Shown in pieces: positions 1-30,153 of a stretch of DNA of 30,153 bases. The stretch is taken from sequence record OQ473815.1; one strand, given 5' to 3'. The position numbers and the translations under genes are program-made. Numbering within the stretch: the first letter of the stretch is position 1; every line of letters begins with the position of its first letter. Under the pieces are notes generated by a model that did not search any database, was not told the origin of the DNA, and saw only the letters and a list, made by a program, of their open reading frames with translations.

Positions 1-77
1 CATCGTCTCCTCCTGAATCATTTTATCACTTGTGAGAATATGTAGCATCGTGGTATTTAAAGCTTTTGGTGACGCGC
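1..77. repeat. Left inverted terminal repeat (inner 77 bp only; truncated by window edge)
   Basis: Reverse complement matches 29324-29400 at 76/77 positions (only mismatch: 63 vs 29338); bases 1-3 (CAT) are the minus-strand ATG of the ITR gene. Confidence 0.95.
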
Positions 78-191
78 CATCTTTTCCATTATTGCTTCTC
101 TTATCCAGTCAGACCTTGTTATATTTCTTTCTGACGCTAGCTTGTCTATCTCTATCACGAGATCTGGGTCTAGCTTTATTGATATTATCAT
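57..191 (-). CDS. CopG-like ribbon-helix-helix transcription regulator, 44 aa (not in ORF track)
   Basis: Manual translation MIISIKLDPDLVIEIDKLASERNITRSDWIREAIMEKMARHQKL; classic RHH pattern; ATG overlaps upstream stop (TGATG). Confidence 0.88.
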   Translation of the reverse strand: MIISIKLDPDLVIEIDKLASERNITRSDWIREAIMEKMARHQKL

Positions 192-4120: not shown

Positions 4121-4136
4121 TTTGTTTTGAGTGTAG

Positions 4137-4252
4137 TTATAAAGAGAGTTAATAATAAATGAAAGAAGCTATTTATCAATAGAGCTATTAATAAATGAAA
4201 GAATAAATTAAAGAAGCTATTTATAAAGAGAGTTATTAATAAATGAGAGAAG
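4137..4252. repeat. Degenerate purine-rich direct repeats
   Basis: TTATAAAGAGAGTTAwTAATAAATGArAGAAG at 4137-4168 and 4221-4252 (2 mismatches), third partial copy near 4188-4203; AAAGAAGCTATTTAT twice. Confidence 0.85.
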
Positions 4253-4312
4253 TGGGTATATACTTAAATAGTAATTTTTGGTAAATAATTTCTTTTGAGT
4301 ACACTTTTGTTA

Positions 4313-4501
4313 TAACGTTTTTATTTCTGTTTCGTTTTTAACTTTTTGATTTTGTCTAGTAGAGTAAAGGGGCGGGTAAGTAATAAAATAATTATAAAAG
4401 TAAGAAAATGACTACATATTTAAATAAATGATCACGATAAACACTTTTTTGTAACTTCACTTTTCTCTTAACGTTTTTATTTCTATTTCATTTTTAACTT
4501 T
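4313..4501. repeat. 33-bp T-rich direct repeat, two copies 156 bp apart
   Basis: TAACGTTTTTATTTCTrTTTCrTTTTTAACTTT at 4313-4345 and 4469-4501 (2 mismatches). Confidence 0.85.
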
Positions 4502-4851
4502 ATGTTTCTCTAAACTTATCTAATTTGTAACTTTTTGGCATATTTTATTATTAGATTATAATGCTATTTGTTCAGTAATAATATTACAAAATTTGAAAAA
4601 TTTTTTGTTTAGACTTTTTGAGTGATTTTTTAACAGATAAAGATTCCCTTAAAAAAATATTTCAAAAAATTTTTGATCTTTTTGGATAATAATTCAATAG
4701 GTATAATATTAAGTAGTAATCTTATTGTATTGTTTGTAGTTATTTTTGTTCTATTTTTAATATAATAGTGAGTTTATGATTGCGTTAAAGATATGGATAA
4801 TAACAAAGTTGAGATAAAAATAAGTTGAGAAATGAGAAAAAGGACAAAAAA

Positions 4852-4900
4852 GAGAAAAGTATATAAACGACAAAAGCAAAGAATATAGTAGTGGAAGTAT
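4852..4900 (+). promoter_or_regulatory. Conserved strong (probably early) promoter
   Basis: GAGAAAAG-TATATAAA ... AATATAGTAGTG; TATA begins 41 nt before ATG, same spacing as 7451-7499. Confidence 0.8.
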
Positions 4901-5509
4901 ATGTCAGAGCAGAATCAAGAAACAAATCAACAAAGATATGTTTTGGAAAACGGTTTTTTTATTCTGAGTGACGGGACTAGAGTCCCGGCTATTTCTCTCA
5001 GAAATATATGGAGCCAAATCCATAAAAGCTATGTAGAGTTAAATTACTTATACTCACTGAAAACGCAAAATTTCATAAAGGGAACTATAATTTATAATGA
5101 TGATAATGAGGACAATGACGGATATAACATAGGAATAAGATATAGATTAAGTTTAGGTGATTATATATGGTTCAAAACGAAAATATATAGGAATAGCAAA
5201 GCTATTGATGTTGAAGTATGTGACGCATATCTGAGGATTGATGACCCTGAGGCTTTAATGAGAGATGAATATGCGTCTTATGTCGAAAAAAGGGAATGTG
5301 TTAATTCACTTATTTACTATGAACAAATTAGTAAAATTGTTACCGACAATTTGGTTATCAAGAAGCTTTTGGATATCGCAAAGTCTTATATTGAAACTGA
5401 AAAAGACGATTTTGAAATACCGGAGATAAACTCTAGCGTCAACTACACATGGAGAGATTTTAAACAAGATATACTTTATTTACGACAACCTTATGACATG
5501 TTTGCTTAA
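4901..5509 (+). CDS. Paralogue 1 of uncharacterised ~190-aa family (candidate anti-defence protein)
   Basis: Shares VPAI, LYS..NF.KG, YR..LGDY, ECV.S..Y..QI, FEIP, W.DFKQ.IL.LRQP with the other three copies. Confidence 0.85.
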   Translation: MSEQNQETNQQRYVLENGFFILSDGTRVPAISLRNIWSQIHKSYVELNYLYSLKTQNFIKGTIIYNDDNEDNDGYNIGIRYRLSLGDYIWFKTKIYRNSKAIDVEVCDAYLRIDDPEALMRDEYASYVEKRECVNSLIYYEQISKIVTDNLVIKKLLDIAKSYIETEKDDFEIPEINSSVNYTWRDFKQDILYLRQPYDMFA

Positions 5510-5518
5510 AGTCAAACC

Positions 5519-5540
5519 TTTTTTTTATTTTTCTGTTTTC
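5519..5540 (+). terminator. Oligo-T terminator between convergent genes
   Basis: T8 run and further T tracts right after the 5509 stop. Confidence 0.55.
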
Positions 5541-5659
5541 TATTTTAGCTTTTAATTTTATCAGATAATATGATGATCTAACTATTTTTTAAAAATTAGC
5601 TTTATATTAAAAGACTAAATTAATACAGAAAATTAAGAAAATTATAAATAAAAAAAGAT

Positions 5660-6187
5660 TTAATCTAACTTTCTCAACTCCAATATTGCGTTTTTAATCC
5701 TTTGGTATGGTATGTATTCTTTGTATTCCAAAAAAGGAATTTGAAACTCAAAACTTTCACCCGCTAAAGCTCTCTTTACTATATTGATAATTTTTTGCAA
5801 TATCGGGTTTTCGCTATTCAATTTCCCTATTTCTTCTTTATAAAACACCGATACAGTTTCCTTAATTGTTATATCGTTTATCTTATAATATCTGTTTAAT
5901 ATCTCATCATAATCGTGAAGTTTAAACTCTGTTCTCTGTGCCACAAACCAATAATTCTTATATACACATTGGTATATCACTTTTAACTGTATGTATTCAC
6001 CGAATTGTATTCTATATTTTAATCTATATATTTTATTTTTTTCCTTTCTTATTATGGCATCAACGAAATCCCCCTTATCCTCAGAATAAAGAAGATCTAA
6101 AAAAAATCCGTAAGGATATAAATTAATTGTTGTTTCATAATCTCCCACTTTGGGGATTACGAAACCTTTATAGTGCATGCATTTCAT
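5660..6187 (-). CDS. Paralogue 2 of the ~190-aa family (most divergent)
   Basis: IPKVG, LLYSEDKGDFV, YRIQFGEY, SENPILQKI, FQIP, IKNAILELR; ATG 6187 matches promoter spacing. Confidence 0.82.
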   Translation of the reverse strand: MKCMHYKGFVIPKVGDYETTINLYPYGFFLDLLYSEDKGDFVDAIIRKEKNKIYRLKYRIQFGEYIQLKVIYQCVYKNYWFVAQRTEFKLHDYDEILNRYYKINDITIKETVSVFYKEEIGKLNSENPILQKIINIVKRALAGESFEFQIPFLEYKEYIPYQRIKNAILELRKLD

Positions 6188-6235
6188 TTTTTTCTCACTA
6201 CAATACATTACTTTTTATCTTTATAAGTCTTTTGT
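6188..6235 (-). promoter_or_regulatory. Conserved strong (probably early) promoter
   Basis: Minus strand AAAAGA-CTTATAAA-GATAAAAAGTAATGTATTGTAGTGAGAAAAAA-ATG. Confidence 0.75.
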
Positions 6236-6295
6236 TGTGCTTCAATTTTTAAACATGTTGATAAACTTAAGAATAAAGAAAAAATATAAGTTAAC

Positions 6296-6718
6296 TTACT
6301 GTATCTTTATTCCTTTTTCTTTTAGTTTCTCTATTATGTATTTATCTTCACAACACTCATTAAGATCTTCTTCATAACAATTTTCATTACAGTAATAGAA
6401 ATTTTCAGTGATTTCGTCTATTATTCTGTCAAGCATTTTTAATAATTCTCTTTCTTTCATATTTGTTTTAATATCAACGTCATATGTTGTATCGGGCATA
6501 TATGTTACGCCCTCACTTTGTATATTTTCACTGTACCTTATTGTAATTTCTAATAACGTTTCTTCATTATTTATAATATCTATACTAATATCAAGATCTT
6601 TATTATCTATATTGTATTTAATACTGTTTCTTATTAGTTTTAGAATATGTATAGTTTCTGAGAGTTGTAATACTGTATCTATCGTTATTTGATTTTCTTG
6701 AGTATTCACGTTTTCCAT
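6296..6718 (-). CDS. Acidic protein with C-terminal Cys cluster, 140 aa (candidate anti-defence protein)
   Basis: Own copy of the shared promoter; CNENCYEEDLNECCE motif; ATG 6718 preferred over GTG 6727. Confidence 0.8.
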   Translation of the reverse strand: MENVNTQENQITIDTVLQLSETIHILKLIRNSIKYNIDNKDLDISIDIINNEETLLEITIRYSENIQSEGVTYMPDTTYDVDIKTNMKERELLKMLDRIIDEITENFYYCNENCYEEDLNECCEDKYIIEKLKEKGIKIQ

Positions 6719-6766
6719 TTCTCTCACTATATTATTTTTCTCTTTTGTTACTTTTAAGCTTTTTGC
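6719..6766 (-). promoter_or_regulatory. Conserved strong (probably early) promoter
   Basis: Minus strand GCAAAAAG-CTTAAAAG-TAACAAAAGAGAAAAATAATATAGTGAGAGAA-ATG. Confidence 0.7.
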
Positions 6767-6821
6767 TTATTTCTTTATCTCACAATTGTGAATATAATCG
6801 AATGAAGCGAAAAGTAATAAT

Positions 6822-7388
6822 GTGAAAAAGAGCAAAATAGATTTTTTGATATCCAATAGCGGGTTAAAAGTACCCGCCATAGGTGTCGTTGAATACGATC
6901 AACACATATCTAAAAAATATCTAAAGTTACAATTCCTATACAGTGAAGAGAAAAATGACTTTGTTGAAGGACTAATAAGGAATGGTGAAGTTATTGGTGA
7001 CGTTGACAAAAAGATTAGATTTGATATATTGTATAGAATACCATTAGGCGAATATTTACTATTTGGTATAGAGAGTGCCGGAAACTATGACTATATGGTA
7101 TTTAGCATTTGCAAAATAAGAGTAAATGCCGATAATGTAGAACATTTGATATTTTCTGAGTTTAATGTTAGCGTTGAAAATGAGGAGTGTATAGCTTCTA
7201 ACGTTTATGCAAATCAGTTAGATAAGATAAGTTCTGAAAATAAACTTATTGATAAAATGTTGTATATAGCGAAATTTTACTATTATAATGACGTTGAGTA
7301 TCTTGAGATACCGAAAAATGAAAGCGGAGAGCATTACGAATGGAATGATCTGAAACAGTCTATCCTATACTTGAGACAACCTTTTTAA
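6822..7388 (+). CDS. Paralogue 3 of the ~190-aa family
   Basis: VPAIG, FLYSEEKNDFVEG, YRIPLGEY, ECIAS.VY..QL, LEIP, W.DLKQSILYLRQPF; GTG start; lacks the shared promoter. Confidence 0.85.
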   Translation: MKKSKIDFLISNSGLKVPAIGVVEYDQHISKKYLKLQFLYSEEKNDFVEGLIRNGEVIGDVDKKIRFDILYRIPLGEYLLFGIESAGNYDYMVFSICKIRVNADNVEHLIFSEFNVSVENEECIASNVYANQLDKISSENKLIDKMLYIAKFYYYNDVEYLEIPKNESGEHYEWNDLKQSILYLRQPF

Positions 7389-7450
7389 GCTTAGTTTATT
7401 TTTTTCCCTTTTATTCTTCTTCTTCTTTCGGTTTAACAGTGAAGTGAAAA

Positions 7451-7499
7451 GAGAAAGATATATAAACAATAAAAGAGTAAAGTATTATAGTGATAAGAT
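7451..7499 (+). promoter_or_regulatory. Conserved strong (probably early) promoter
   Basis: GAGAAAGA-TATATAAA-CAATAAAAGAGTAAAGTATTATAGTGATAAGAT-ATG. Confidence 0.8.
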
Positions 7500-8078
7500 A
7501 TGAGTCAACAAACACAACAAAACCAAATAGAAGAAACAGAATTTTTTAATGAATACGATAATTATCTTATTCCTAAAGTGGGGATTCTAGTTAGACAGAA
7601 TAAAATTTATGACGATAACTTTACTGTCTCACTATTGTACTCATTAGACAAAGGCGATTTTGTTAACGGTTACGTTATACCTTTCAAGAATGATGATAGC
7701 ACTATAACCTATAACGTGTTTTATAGAGTTCTATTAAAACAATACGCTCTATTTAATTTATATTATGTTAAACCATACGATTACTATACTGTAGAATTAT
7801 GTCTAATAAACGTGAAGACAGACGATATTAGAGACTTATATATTGATGAGGAAAAAGTTAATTATGAAACTATTGAATGCGTTAGCTCTAGAGTTTACGC
7901 ATATCAACTACATAATATAAAATCGGATAACACAACAATAGAGAAGATATTAGAGTTACTGAGATCTCACACGTTTACTTTTGAAATTCCTCACGTTCAA
8001 CAACCCACTAAAGTGGAATGGCATGATCTCAAGCAATCAGTCCTTAGATTAAGGATACCATTCGATCTAGAAGCTTAA
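7500..8078 (+). CDS. Paralogue 4 of the ~190-aa family
   Basis: IPKVG, LLYSLDKGDFVNG, YRVLLKQY, ECVSS.VY..QL, FEIP, WHDLKQSVLRLR.PF; Gln-rich N-terminus like paralogue 1. Confidence 0.87.
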   Translation: MSQQTQQNQIEETEFFNEYDNYLIPKVGILVRQNKIYDDNFTVSLLYSLDKGDFVNGYVIPFKNDDSTITYNVFYRVLLKQYALFNLYYVKPYDYYTVELCLINVKTDDIRDLYIDEEKVNYETIECVSSRVYAYQLHNIKSDNTTIEKILELLRSHTFTFEIPHVQQPTKVEWHDLKQSVLRLRIPFDLEA

Positions 8079-8110
8079 TTTTTTGTCTAGTCTTCATGAT
8101 GGTGATAGAT

Positions 8111-8458
8111 ATGTCCACACCTCAAGATAAAAAAACAAGAAGTTCCCCCGAATGTGTTTATTTTGAATTCGATCCTTTCAAAATACCTAAAGACGTACAA
8201 AAGGAAATAATTTTTAGTTTTCTTAATAAAAGCCGTGGTAGGGTCAGAGTGAACACAAGTTACGTTACCAATCCTAACGGCGTTTCTGAAGAGATAGCTT
8301 TAGTGAAAATGGTAGTGGGAAGAACTAGTCACTTGTTCGCTTACTTTAGTGCCAGTGCGATGAGAGAAGTGTTAAAGAACGCCGAATACTATCTAGAGAA
8401 AAAAGAGGAATGCGCCGATATCAGTTTTGAAGTGTGGAGAAGAAAGGTTAAAAGTTAA
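8111..8458 (+). CDS. Hypothetical protein, 115 aa
   Basis: ATG 8111 with GGTGA RBS at 8101-8105. Confidence 0.75.
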   Translation: MSTPQDKKTRSSPECVYFEFDPFKIPKDVQKEIIFSFLNKSRGRVRVNTSYVTNPNGVSEEIALVKMVVGRTSHLFAYFSASAMREVLKNAEYYLEKKEECADISFEVWRRKVKS

Positions 8459-8484
8459 CCCTTTTTCTTTAACATAAAAGTAAA

Positions 8485-8534
8485 AGAAAACTTTATAAGG
8501 TTTAAGTACAATAGTAAGATAGAGGTGAAAAAAG
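8485..8534 (+). promoter_or_regulatory. Promoter and RBS of acrIII-1 operon
   Basis: AGAAAAC-TTTATAAG ... ATAGTAAG ... GAGGTGA RBS; looser match to the shared early promoter. Confidence 0.65.
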
Positions 8535-8882
8535 GTGTCAAACCAAAAACAAAAATTGGTTTATTTAAGTAATGCCTTCAGTCCGGGCATGCTTTCAAGC
8601 TACCCCGTGACTGTGAGGATAGAACAAGTTAGCGAAAGCGAGTTCGCTAACGTTGTGAAGAGCGAGAACGTGGTGAACGCTATAGGGCATCAGGGTACTG
8701 TTGACTTCATTAACGCCAAGTTCAACGCCAAACTGATGATGAATAGGATAACGCTGAAGCTAGGGTCAGGTGATGTGCTTTACATAATACAGTTGCTAAC
8801 GCGTTTGCCAGAGGGTAAAGTGCTAACTAGTGAAGAAGTTGCTAACATTAAGAGCGTATACCTAAAGATAACTGTAATGTGA
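8535..8882 (+). CDS. acrIII-1: AcrIII-1 viral ring nuclease (DUF1874), degrades cyclic tetra-adenylate
   Basis: YLSNAFSPGML, IGHQGT (catalytic His), NRITLKL, QLLTRLPEGKVLTSEE match the recalled SIRV1 gp29 family motifs. Confidence 0.93.
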   Translation: MSNQKQKLVYLSNAFSPGMLSSYPVTVRIEQVSESEFANVVKSENVVNAIGHQGTVDFINAKFNAKLMMNRITLKLGSGDVLYIIQLLTRLPEGKVLTSEEVANIKSVYLKITVM

Positions 8883-8888
8883 CCAAAG

Positions 8889-9071
8889 ATGACAGGTAAG
8901 GTTTCCTACATTAGGAGGTGGGAGAGTGAGGGGAGACCTTACTCTCTATCACCTAGCGAGCGCCTAGTCTATGACTTCTTAGCTTATTTGCCGGGTTACG
9001 ACGATGAAACACTGAAAGAGATAAAAGAGGAGATTGAGAAGATAATGGAGAAGAGGAAGAACAAGAAATGA
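8889..9071 (+). CDS. Small protein, 60 aa, with C-terminal basic/coiled-coil segment
   Basis: Directly follows acrIII-1; overlaps next gene (ATGA). Confidence 0.7.
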   Translation: MTGKVSYIRRWESEGRPYSLSPSERLVYDFLAYLPGYDDETLKEIKEEIEKIMEKRKNKK

Positions 9072-12198: not shown

Positions 12199-12687
12199 AT
12201 GGGTAAGAGGAATAGGAGGTTAAGTAAGGCTTCAGTACCTAGGTACGCCCTATCAAGGATCTCGATAAACCTAGGTAAGGCTGGACACATAGTGTCAAGT
12301 GAAGTAGCTAAGAACAGTGACGTGATGAAGCTAGTAGTAGACACCTCAGTGAACGAGGCTGAGAACTGGTATAACAACTACGACCTATATCATAAGGTAA
12401 AGCAGATCGTCAAGGACTACATGGACGAGATACAGTTGCCAACTAGGTTCCAAGGTCTTCTAATGTCTTACGGAGAGAAGATAGTTGCTAACGTTATCGT
12501 AGACTGGAAAGGCATTGACATAACTGACCTACAGGCTCAATACGTAAGGGACATGTCAACGTATCAAAACGGCATAGCTACGCCCACAATCTCTTACGTT
12601 ACTAGAGACGGAAAAAGCAAGAGCTACCAAATACCTGAAATCTTGTCTGAAGTTACGAAAAGGATACTTAGGACCTTCAAGCAATAA
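12199..12687 (+). CDS. Major capsid protein 2 (SIFV-like)
   Basis: RNRRLS.ASV.RY.L.RIS.N.G, FQGLLMSYGEKIVAN.I.DWKG, YVTRDGK match the recalled second SIFV MCP; GAGGTGA RBS. Confidence 0.92.
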   Translation: MGKRNRRLSKASVPRYALSRISINLGKAGHIVSSEVAKNSDVMKLVVDTSVNEAENWYNNYDLYHKVKQIVKDYMDEIQLPTRFQGLLMSYGEKIVANVIVDWKGIDITDLQAQYVRDMSTYQNGIATPTISYVTRDGKSKSYQIPEILSEVTKRILRTFKQ

Positions 12688-12690
12688 ATA

Positions 12691-12724
12691 AATTTTTTTA
12701 TATCTCTTTCTTCCTCTATTTATT
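12691..12724 (+). promoter_or_regulatory. Combined oligo-T terminator and leaderless promoter
   Basis: AATTTTTTTATATCTC, identical to 15985-16000; both copies begin 34 nt before an ATG. Confidence 0.65.
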
Positions 12725-14368: not shown

Positions 14369-15160
14369 ATGATATGTTGGTCACCCTGTGTTAAGTGTAG
14401 CTATGAGGACGTGGCTAAGCTAACGTGTGATAGTGTGACTCAAGACGTATATAAAGCTGACATCTGTGTGGACGACCAGTTCATGTTCCTCAGGAGGTTC
14501 ATGTTCTCCCCACCTAAGTGTAAGGCTATACTTGACAGTATGGCGGACCCACTTAACTACGCGTTAAGCAAAAGGATACCGTTCTACACAAGCTCAGAGT
14601 GGAACTACAGGTTATGGAAAAGCAAAGGGTTTAACGTACAGGGGATAGAGAAGAGACCGATAAAGGTGTACGAGGAGTTCCTTGACGTGAAGAAGGACAT
14701 AGAGTTCATCGTTGTTGGCGCGTCAAGGTTCTTTGATAGAAAGAACCTTTACCTAGCCCATGAGGTGATGACTGAACTTGGAGTGAGGAAGAAGTCAATA
14801 ATAGTTGGTAAAATAGATCCGAGTCCAGGGTTAAGGCTAGTTCACGGACAACTCAAGCCCATACCACCCTTCAGGGTAGACTACCTACCTTTCACCCAGT
14901 CACGAAAGGAGTTACACATGCTCATGGCTAGGGCTAAGTACTACCTAGCCTTATCAGTGGTTGAAGGGGTTGGTCTACCACCGATTGAGGCTATGCAATA
15001 CGGTACGATACCGATATACGTTGACGCCCACGGGTTCCATGAGAACCTACGTGGGATACCGGTTGAACCGTCAAGGCATTACGTGAAGGTAATAAGCGAT
15101 TACCCATTCCACATTTGGGAAGTGGAAAAGCAAGATATATTAAATGCAATAAAGAAATAA
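14369..15160 (+). CDS. GT-B glycosyltransferase
   Basis: DRKNL, AKYYLALSVVEGVGLPPIEAMQYG (E-x7-E motif). Confidence 0.88.
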   Translation: MICWSPCVKCSYEDVAKLTCDSVTQDVYKADICVDDQFMFLRRFMFSPPKCKAILDSMADPLNYALSKRIPFYTSSEWNYRLWKSKGFNVQGIEKRPIKVYEEFLDVKKDIEFIVVGASRFFDRKNLYLAHEVMTELGVRKKSIIVGKIDPSPGLRLVHGQLKPIPPFRVDYLPFTQSRKELHMLMARAKYYLALSVVEGVGLPPIEAMQYGTIPIYVDAHGFHENLRGIPVEPSRHYVKVISDYPFHIWEVEKQDILNAIKK

Positions 15161-15706
15161 ATGAACAGTATGGAGAGTACGATAAACCTCAAGGGGTCTT
15201 TGGCTTACATATACAAGGTGTTGGTTGACTCGCTGATTAAGATGAAGGTACAACCGATAGCTGGAGCGATAGATGAGAACAACCTAGTTATAGGAGTTAA
15301 GTTAGCGGACATAGCTGAGATAATAACGTCAGAGATAGATAAGGGAAAGTGGAAAATGAAGCTAAATGAGGGTAAGCTCTACCTGAAAAGTAACGAGAAG
15401 GCTAACGAGGAGGAACTAAGGGAAGTGAACAAGAACGTGTTGTCAAAAATAAGGAAGCTTGGCATAGACTCAGGGGCATACATAACTGACGATAACGAGA
15501 CCGTTATCCTGATAGACGTTGAGGGTATAGTGAGACAGGTCTTACAGAACGCGTTGATGGTAACTAGGGACAAGGTGGGTAGTCACATGAGGCTAGTACG
15601 TACAAGGTTTGGGACTCTTGAGGGTTACACTTACATCCTCCTTTACAAGAAGGGAAAGGAGACGAACGGAAGCGAACTTAGGAAGATGCTTGATGAAGTG
15701 AGTTAG
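15161..15706 (+). CDS. Hypothetical protein, 181 aa, internally duplicated
   Basis: Starts immediately after the GT stop; repeated DENNLVIGVKL / DDNETVILIDV. Confidence 0.85.
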   Translation: MNSMESTINLKGSLAYIYKVLVDSLIKMKVQPIAGAIDENNLVIGVKLADIAEIITSEIDKGKWKMKLNEGKLYLKSNEKANEEELREVNKNVLSKIRKLGIDSGAYITDDNETVILIDVEGIVRQVLQNALMVTRDKVGSHMRLVRTRFGTLEGYTYILLYKKGKETNGSELRKMLDEVS

Positions 15707-15756: not shown

Positions 15757-15972
15757 ATGTCCTACTCAGATATAAGCTCCGCCCTAACGTCAGTAGCAAC
15801 CAACTTAGTAGGTGCAATATCGTCCTTCCTTTCAGGAATAGCGAACTTCATAGCTAACAACGCCGACCTCTTCGTAGGGATTGCAGTTGCTGGACTCGTT
15901 GTGGGTCTGATAGCGAAGTTCGGAACCTCGTTGCCCTTCATCGGTCAGTTCCTGAGCTACTTAGGGCTATAA
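15757..15972 (+). CDS. Small hydrophobic protein, 71 aa; probable virion envelope protein
   Basis: Amphipathic N-helix plus TM helix; own promoter (TATAAATA 15720-15727), GGTGGG RBS, own terminator. Confidence 0.8.
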   Translation: MSYSDISSALTSVATNLVGAISSFLSGIANFIANNADLFVGIAVAGLVVGLIAKFGTSLPFIGQFLSYLGL

Positions 15973-15984
15973 AATTAGTTGAGT

Positions 15985-16018
15985 AATTTTTTTATATCTC
16001 GTTTTCCTATTTTTGTTT
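15985..16018 (+). promoter_or_regulatory. Combined oligo-T terminator and leaderless promoter
   Basis: Second copy of AATTTTTTTATATCTC, beginning 34 nt before ATG 16019. Confidence 0.65.
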
Positions 16019-29323: not shown

Positions 29324-29397
29324 GCGCGTCACCAAAAACTTTAAATACCACGATGCTACATATTCTCACAAGTGATAAAATGATTCAGGAGGAGACG

Positions 29398-30153
29398 ATG
29401 AAGAGGTTCGTTGCGATGAATGATACCTCAGACGTCTCACTCCCGAATCTCATTCTGATTACGCCTGATGAATTGTCAAATGAATTGAAAGAAAACTTTT
29501 TGAATGCTCCTTTCAGGTGGTTCGTCGTCCACAACACCGAAATGTCGCTCGAGAGTCGCATCGTGGCAAGACGCATCATGTCACAAGATACCAGCATCAC
29601 GTCGCAAGACAACACGTCGCACCAAGTCACGTCGCACGAGAACCACACCAGAACGCACCAGAACCACGTCACACCAAGTCACAACGAAACGCAAGACAAC
29701 GCATCGCACGAGAACCACACCAAGTCGCACCAGAACGCGTCGCACCAAGTCACGTCGCAACGCAACGAAACGCACCAAGTCACGCCACTCAGCACCACGT
29801 CGCACCAGGACCAAGTCACACCGGACCACACCAGCACCAAGTCAGACCACGAAACGCAACCGAAAGATTTAAATATCCGCAATGAGATAGTCAACGTTTC
29901 TTTCTTTCCCACTACTCAACTACTACTACTACTCAAAGGAAATAAGAACCAACCAATCAACCAATCTACCAACATACCAATCTACAAAGATACCAAAAAA
30001 GAAACGTACCAAAACATCAACGAACCAAATAAGAAACGTATCAAAACAGAAACGAATCAAAACAGAAACAAATCTATCTATAATATAATATATAAAAACA
30101 AAAGAAGAACGAACGAATATTATATATATAATAATAACAAAAGAAAACAGAAT
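29398..30153 (+). CDS. ITR-encoded ORF open to window end (at least 252 codons; not in ORF track)
   Basis: TTTAAATA box at 29340-29347, GGAGGAG RBS; MKRFVAMNDTSDVSLPNLILITPDELSNELKENFLNAPFRWFVVHNTEMSLESRIVARRIM then a His/Thr/Gln-rich tail; no stop codon. Confidence 0.6.
   Translation, partial: MKRFVAMNDTSDVSLPNLILITPDELSNELKENFLNAPFRWFVVHNTEMSLESRIVARRIMSQDTSITSQDNTSHQVTSHENHTRTHQNHVTPSHNETQDNASHENHTKSHQNASHQVTSQRNETHQVTPLSTTSHQDQVTPDHTSTKSDHETQPKDLNIRNEIVNVSFFPTTQLLLLLKGNKNQPINQSTNIPIYKDTKKETYQNINEPNKKRIKTETNQNRNKSIYNIIYKNKRRTNEYYIYNNNKRKQN
29580..29870 (+). repeat. Degenerate 5-bp-periodic repeat tract
   Basis: Recurring GTCGC, GTCAC, ACCAA, ACCAG, AACGC, AGAAC units; very T-poor + strand. 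Confidence 0.85.
29940..30153 (+). repeat. A/C-rich low-complexity terminal tract (AACCA/AACAA/AACGA-like; TTGTT-like on minus strand)
   Basis: Seen directly; extreme strand skew. Confidence 0.7.

Follow-up and report, generated by a model that had tools for sequence, protein, structure and literature searches.

Why do four single genes of a filamentous archaeal virus, one of them unrelated to the other three, begin behind almost the same stretch of DNA? The question is raised by the AT-rich island of sequence record OQ473815.1, a partial genome of Saccharolobus shibatae rod virus 2 (SSRV2), the whole of which (30,153 nt) is the window analysed here. An initial annotation of this DNA had proposed that a shared promoter and leader mark a regulon of candidate anti-defence genes. 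Our results suggest that the element is a virus-specific strong early promoter with a short leader, and that the genes behind it (hereafter, motif genes) are candidate anti-defence genes, a reading to which we assign a probability of about 0.62.

Over 4700-8900 the window matches OP999015 (SSFV3) with 100% identity. SSRV2/SSFV3 infects S. shibatae 1201-1, a host from a Chinese hot spring; it was isolated at Tengchong and belongs to the filamentous lipothrixviruses (PMC10101205), and its major capsid protein has only ~37% identity to the counterparts in SIFV and AFV3/6/7/8/9. The paper on this virus (PMC10101205) makes no mention of promoter, anti-CRISPR, DUF1874 or paralog. The GC content is 24-29% at 4-8 kb of the window against 40-46% elsewhere, and the motif genes cluster at 4.8-8.1 kb of the 30.2 kb, close to the left end of the linear genome and adjoining a DUF1874 gene. 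Each is a single gene, not an operon-internal one, with a promoter of its own before it and T-rich tracts after it.

A shared element before four genes

The element lies directly 5' of the starts at 4901(+), 7500(+), 6187(-) and 6718(-), can be aligned over ~55 nt and consists, in this order, of a purine-rich transcription factor B recognition element (BRE), a TATA 8-mer, an A-rich AAAAG block, TAGTGR, a further 5-7 nt and the ATG, for a length of ~50-60 nt. The TATA 8-mer begins 39-41 nt 5' of the ATG, close to the 40-41 nt given by the initial annotation, and TAGTGR lies 5-7 nt 5' of it. Three of the genes encode paralogues with the fold of AFV1 ORF157 (P1 at 4901, P2 at 6187 and P4 at 7500) and the fourth, at 6718, is an unrelated acidic 140-aa open reading frame (ORF), ORF12. 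The module of P1 (4844..4903, + strand; E 3.9e-11) contains a purine-rich BRE, TATATAAA at 4860-4867, TAGTGG at 4889-4894 and the ATG at 4901, and that of P4 (7441..7502, + strand; E 7.8e-12) has the same TATATAAA at 7459-7466, TAGTGA at 7488-7493 and the ATG at 7500; both are matched by the regular expression described below. The ORF12 module (6719..6774, - strand) is found with an E of 6.7e-8, while that of P2 (6188..6242, - strand; E 9.9e-5) is the most diverged copy and its spacing is 2 nt shorter. At all four sites the purine-rich BRE stands directly 5' of a consensus TATA box, although the boxes of ORF12 (TTAAAAGT) and P2 (TTATAAAG) are weaker.

The similarity among these sites is well above what the genome offers by chance. 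The pattern AAAG-N11-16-TAGTGR-N5-7-ATG has three matches where 0.07 are expected, and at least three were obtained in 0 of 100 shuffles, while TAGTGR-N5-7-ATG alone has six matches against 1.7 expected, four of the six being motif gene starts. The six pairwise identities among the four 50-nt upstream regions are 0.68-0.80, whereas comparison with 23 promoters of other genes in this genome gives a mean identity of 0.37 and a maximum of 0.62. When 48 upstream regions were compared all against all (1,128 pairs), the motif pairs ranked top, with scores of 29-44 against a mean of 15 and a standard deviation of 3.5. An nhmmer profile was built from 19 sites, namely the four of the window and 15 from contigs L002-L008, which are metagenome and metagenome-assembled genome (MAG) contigs of variants of SSRV2/SSFV3. 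On the genome this profile matches only the four motif sites (E 8e-12, 4e-11, 7e-8 and 1e-4; next E 1.7), and structural genes have no match to it, either in the window or in the 10.6-kb variant contig L004, which covers the structural module; the equal occurrence before structural genes that the initial annotation had named as a refutation is therefore not what was found.

That the element reaches beyond one gene family is indicated by ORF12. A profile built without any ORF12 site recovers the ORF12 promoter with an E of 6.6e-5, and therefore the link between unrelated genes is real; leave-one-out profiles of three sequences were underpowered (E 0.27-4.6). By contrast, the loose match that had been seen before 8535, upstream of acrIII-1, is not significant (E 15) and is not among the matches of the 19-site profile. 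The proposed extension of the regulon from the paralogue family to unrelated genes is supported for ORF12 and not supported for acrIII-1. A DNA pattern scan of IMG/VR with the TATA-proximal half gave 14 single matches; nhmmer recognised the complete motif in none of them (best E 0.06), and they were rejected as chance matches.

Predicted transcription start and leader

Genes 1189, 2246, 12725 and 13000 of this genome have the TATA 8-mer 21-23 nt before the start codon and look leaderless, whereas in the motif genes 31-33 nt separate the 8-mer from the start codon. From these spacings, the predicted transcription start of the motif genes is the A of TAGTGA. At every one of the 19 sites an invariant AG follows a pyrimidine, T or C, and the population variant at 7488, a T-to-C change, preserves this pyrimidine; the Y|AG appears to fit an archaeal initiator (Y-1, A+1, G+2) within TAGTGA. 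The predicted leader would then be ~11 nt long, with a putative Shine-Dalgarno-like GUGA(U) 5-7 nt before the AUG, a register shared with the canonical GGTGA(T) that this genome has 4-6 nt before operon-internal starts. Downstream of the TATA box, the ~20 nt that lead up to the predicted transcription start are conserved as well, although several positions in them vary freely in the 19 sites. The whole element is best read as a full core promoter plus 5' untranslated region (UTR), in support of the shared promoter and leader initially proposed. The TRTAGTGA element singled out at that time is indeed conserved, but it is better read as initiator plus SD (Shine-Dalgarno)-like GUGA than as a separate operator. 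A common grammar of early archaeal-virus promoters is suggested by these observations: TATA, about 21-22 nt, a Y|AG start, a short SD-like leader and AUG.

Therefore, we hypothesize that a complete, virus-specific strong core promoter (purine-rich BRE, near-consensus TATA, A-rich stretch and initiator) is fused to a short 5' UTR of ~11 nt, whose GUGA would stand in the SD register. The basal host machinery (TATA-binding protein, transcription factor B and RNA polymerase) would fire all copies together, and the accessory cassettes of the AT-rich island, each of a single gene, would be expressed in concert and probably as immediate-early genes; these are the three paralogues with the AFV1 ORF157 fold, ORF12 and, probably, ORF16 via read-through from P4. 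Bhoobalan-Chitty et al. (2024, Nat Commun; PMC11065993) described conserved regulatory sequences, specific to each virus and with a strong BRE/TATA, that precede early anti-defence genes in rudiviruses and lipothrixviruses, so that the background knowledge invoked by the initial annotation is correct. Since our element is of the same kind as the early/anti-defence regulatory sequences of SIRV2, SIFV and other viruses, the motif genes become candidate anti-defence genes that, by analogy, may be expressed early.

The motif genes and their products

The four paralogues (P1-P4) share only 22-35% protein identity. P1 (202 aa; 4901..5509, + strand) was placed in the AFV1-ORF157-like fold family by alignments and the family model, P2 (175 aa; 5660..6187, - strand) by alignments, and P4 (192 aa; 7500..8078, + strand) by its AlphaFold2 (AF2) model, which reached a predicted local distance difference test (pLDDT) of 84 and a predicted template modelling score (pTM) of 0.80. 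This model matches AFV1 ORF157 in Foldseek (E 3e-6, probability 1.0) and in VIA, with Z 13.5-13.8 and a root-mean-square deviation of 2.7-2.8 Å over 142-146 residues, the next entry having a Z of 4.3. By sequence, AFV1 ORF157 is also the top entry when the paralogue profile is compared with the PDB, but weakly (hmmsearch E 0.028), and hhalign gives a probability of 48% and an E of 2e-4 over 60 columns. Relatives in BFVD, from SBRV1, SBFV1, SBFV2 and ABV3, are annotated as 'putative nuclease'. In GenBank phages, tblastn of P4 up to E 10 returned only SSRV2/SSFV3 itself, a protein-pattern search of IMG/VR and JGI metagenomes found no relatives, and the motif genes have no Pfam match. The anatomy of the element also bears on gene starts: the true start of P2 (ORF10) is probably the ATG at 6187 and not the annotated 6208, because the latter falls 3' of the TATA box and yet 5' of the predicted transcription start.

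ORF12 (140 aa; 6296..6718, - strand) has a pI of 4.3 and a conserved C-terminal CxxxC...CC, and it is unrelated to the paralogues (hhalign probability 0.2 against the paralogue profile). It has no Pfam or PHROG match, is blank in the protein atlas, and its AF2 model (pLDDT 72) has no Foldseek match in the PDB (best E 0.2). Two antisense GenBank ORFs of this region, ORF11 and ORF13 (6177-6377 and 6658-6825), overlap real genes or promoters and are probably spurious.

Paralogue 3 and the cassettes in natural populations

Paralogue 3 (P3; 6822..7388, + strand) is truncated at its 5' end, and the initial annotation had noted that it lacks the motif. The motif is missing, but this is not the original state. 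Alignment with variants revealed a deletion of ~80 bp in this isolate, with a remnant of the gene's own BRE (6822-6837) joined to about codon 11, between short A-runs, and the junction at ~6837/6838. P3 lacks the motif because these ~80 bp, from the TATA box through the leader and ATG to about codon 11, were deleted; in variants L004, L006 and L007 the P3 orthologue has a full N-terminus and a complete module before it, and contig ends from three metagenomes, which diverge at window 6834/6837, give the same picture. A degenerate motif copy lies upstream (6780..6821, + strand), in which the palindrome TCACAATTGTGA (6780-6791) replaces the BRE and AATATAAT follows at 6791-6798, with 23 nt to the GTG at 6822. 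Judging from this spacing, AATATAAT could give a leaderless GUG transcript of P3. The palindrome was considered as an operator and dropped, since single changes break it in two variants.

The 15 variant sites precede orthologues of P1, P3, P4 and ORF12, a 154-aa gene and a mini-ORF of 10 codons. Contigs from three hot-spring studies, independent of one another, record a series of rearrangements. P2 is lost (joint 5542->6275), ORF12 is replaced (joint 6297->6762), and the gene order differs, with a motif copy inserted (joint 6803->4790). P4 has been deleted by a joint at 7489->8102, with 6 shared letters, that lies within the GTGATA common to the leaders of P4 and ORF16. Upstream of P1, one variant carries a motif copy 5' of the 10-codon mini-ORF only. 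In addition, the P3 promoter of L004 equals the P4 promoter of L003 over the aligned columns, with few upstream differences from the P4 promoter of the window. Natural populations thus delete, swap and rearrange exactly these cassettes, which provides a context for their candidate status.

Some observations on single contigs can be added. At 398-751 of L003 there is a variant of P4 with a premature stop in mid-gene (117 aa against 192) and CAGTGA in place of TAGTGA. In L008 (539-1003, - strand) and in an ERZ1758400 contig, the 154-aa gene with the motif stands in place of P2; only its C-terminal helical module is common with the paralogues (hhalign probability 96%), the N-terminal part being different, which indicates domain shuffling within the family, and the gene was for this reason rejected as a third independent motif family. 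Contigs L004, L005 and L006 are binned in public MAGs that bear the names Metallosphaera sp., Saccharolobus sp. and Thermoplasmata archaeon, and about half of the words of the stretch occur in several runs labelled 'manure metagenome'; both look like binning or labelling artefacts.

Alternative explanations

Several results weigh against the early anti-defence reading. Three of the four motif sites belong to paralogues, hence their similarity is partly inherited, and a profile built without the P2 site ranks P2 as its best new match at an E of only 0.12, which is marginal. GUGA is a weak SD element, of 4-5 bp against the anti-SD in the 16S rRNA of the host. AFV1 ORF157 itself is absent from the anti-defence gene list of Bhoobalan-Chitty et al. 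(PMC11065993) and is described as a nuclease. The hot-spring metatranscriptome X22 has 0 reads on 4700-8900 and so offers no test of timing, and a Pfam scan of ten small ORFs found no Aca-like regulator with a helix-turn-helix (HTH), ribbon-helix-helix (RHH) or winged helix-turn-helix (wHTH). AcrIIIB1 (SIRV2 ORF249) was also considered as a relative of the paralogues and rejected, with an hhalign probability of 0.2 against their profile.

The motif genes might be co-regulated and yet serve other purposes than anti-defence, for instance as nucleases or DNA-binding proteins in replication, host DNA handling or superinfection exclusion. The structural match of P4 to AFV1 ORF157 and the nuclease annotation of the BFVD relatives agree with such a role, as does the nuclease activity in vitro that Goulet et al. 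2010 reportedly found for ORF157. The residues said to matter for this activity are E86 and K57, but K57 aligns with a non-conserved hydrophobic position in the paralogues and E86 lies outside the sequence alignment. Moreover, the genes are dispensable and variable in nature (P2 absent, P3 truncated, a P4 orthologue broken), a better fit to arms-race accessory genes than to core functions, and we regard a purely non-defence role as unlikely, though a serious contender.

A second possibility is that the conserved part 3' of the TATA box mainly binds a dedicated repressor or activator, of viral or host origin, with an Aca-like shut-off after the early phase. PMC11065993 proposes such control by Aca8 for SIRV2 and by leucine-zipper proteins for SMV2, and the ~20 conserved nt between TATA and predicted start exceed what a minimal promoter needs. 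However, the same Pfam scan offers no regulator to bind there and the motif genes have no Pfam match, no dyad symmetry was seen on inspection of the conserved stretch, several of its positions vary freely, and the sole nearby palindrome (6780-6791) is the one broken in variants, all of which makes an operator a rather improbable main function.

That the similarity is only a historical footprint, in which promoters were copied with their genes and kept alike by recombination or gene conversion with neither selection for co-regulation nor a link to defence, would suit the predominance of paralogues among the sites, the promoter variants swapped among paralogues and the recombination joints in or near modules, but is very unlikely, given that similarity is higher in the upstream 50 nt (0.72-0.80) than in the coding sequences (0.50-0.59) of proteins as diverged as these, that the unrelated ORF12 carries the motif, and that the initiator and SD-register positions are invariant in the 19 sites while positions between them vary.

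The early promoter/leader reading can be extended. The cassette may double as an early signal and a portable recombination module, to be swapped, deleted or duplicated in frame with a ready-made start, in which case the ORF157-fold paralogues and ORF12 would be new archaeal anti-defence families. The P4 deletion joined in the common GTGATA and the motif copy driving the mini-ORF upstream of P1 are examples of what this would mean; we put the extension forward tentatively and consider it doubtful in its full form. Few archaeal anti-defence proteins are known, and guilt by association through regulatory sequences is the main current route to them. Applied to a distant lipothrixvirus, this approach nominates two families, the AFV1-ORF157 fold, up to now an orphan 'nuclease', and a 140-aa acidic protein with Cys residues, and yields as by-products corrected gene starts, a predicted transcription start and an explanation of the paralogue without motif.

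Neighbouring genes and other features

The DUF1874/AcrIII-1 homologue (8482..8882, + strand; Pfam PF08960, 2.5e-21) has its own BRE/TATA (TTTATAAG, 8492-8499) and a canonical GAGGTGA. Its start is ambiguous, being either the GTG at 8535, with a perfect SD, or the TTG at 8556, which is ATG in L004. Its membership of the regulon is not supported, in line with the motif prevalence of only 0.13 given for acrIII-1 in PMC11065993. Between this gene and P4 lies ORF16 (115 aa; 8101..8458, + strand), for which 8111 is a likelier start than 8096, the gene call in variant L004 using the matching ATG. Before it stands GGTGATAGAT, similar to the motif leader, and a separate TATA box is lacking; this arrangement suggests that ORF16 is probably co-transcribed with P4.

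On the other side of the cluster, the ~780 nt after the helicase gene (4121-4900) hold no credible ORF. They include a 48-nt repeat in four copies that overlap (4135-4266), with 12/36-nt spacing and TTAATAAATGARAGAA in each copy, two 70-nt repeats at 4282 and 4438 that are 80% alike, a copy of the P4-ORF16 spacer (8077-8099) at 4599-4621, and, at 4757-4771, an orphan TAGTGA beside a TATA-like run. These repeats and orphan elements could be remnants of decayed cassettes or an array of binding sites.

Elsewhere in the window, genes 12725 and 16013 share a different promoter (12680-12724 and 15970-16012), with AATTTTTTTATATCTC, a T-rich upstream part and leaderless spacing; the local alignment score of this pair is 40 against a mean of 15, and it looks like a second promoter class, of the structural module. 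At 15120-15160, inside the end of a glycosyltransferase gene, there is a BRE/TATA stretch very like that of P4 (score 38), without the TAGTGA leader and too near the ATG at 15161 for the usual spacing, which may be an internal promoter. The upstream regions of genes 92(+) and 29335(-) (window 1-100 and 29336-29430) are nearly identical and mark inverted terminal repeats.

Comparison with known systems

Compared with AFV1 ORF157 (PDB 3II2, 'novel class of nuclease'), the paralogues have the same fold across the whole domain and a similar location, in the accessory region towards the end of the genome of a filamentous archaeal virus; the AFV1 gene belongs to an operon headed by ORF99, an AcrID1 homologue that is listed as an anti-defence gene in PMC11065993. 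They differ from it in having only ~19% identity, no conserved K57 and an N-terminal extension of ~25 residues, modelled with low confidence in its first 13 (pLDDT below 50), and in being four, each with its own promoter (that of P3 lost in part).

As regards bacterial phages, acr operons with Aca repressors likewise rely on a shared strong promoter for the immediate expression of small, fast-evolving accessory genes, a concept taken up in PMC11065993, whereas here the grammar is the archaeal BRE/TATA, the cassettes are monocistronic instead of one operon, and the analysis found no repressor or operator.

The closest parallel is in Bhoobalan-Chitty et al. (2024), where regulatory sequences served to predict anti-defence genes with a threshold of MEME p or RSAT E below 1e-8. 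SSRV2/SSFV3 was not in that data set, its sequence outside BRE/TATA is lineage-specific (nothing similar in the IMG/VR scan), no homologue of Aca8 or other regulator was seen here, and the gene families involved are different ones, the ORF157 fold and ORF12. In the anti-defence promoters of SIRV2 and SIFV, GGTGA/GAGG-type elements occupy the place taken here by AGTGA. In both cases, a purine-rich BRE and consensus TATA are combined with extra conserved flanks common to several single genes per genome, the encoded proteins are unrelated or weakly related, and the genes cluster near one end of a linear genome of lipothrixvirus type. SIRV2 gp48, gp52, gp53 and gp54 and SIFV0013, 0015, 0019 and 0020 also have the TATA ~40 nt before the ATG and an SD-type element 5-8 nt before the start. 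The phenomenon is thus already known (PMC11065993), and what is new is its occurrence in SSRV2/SSFV3.

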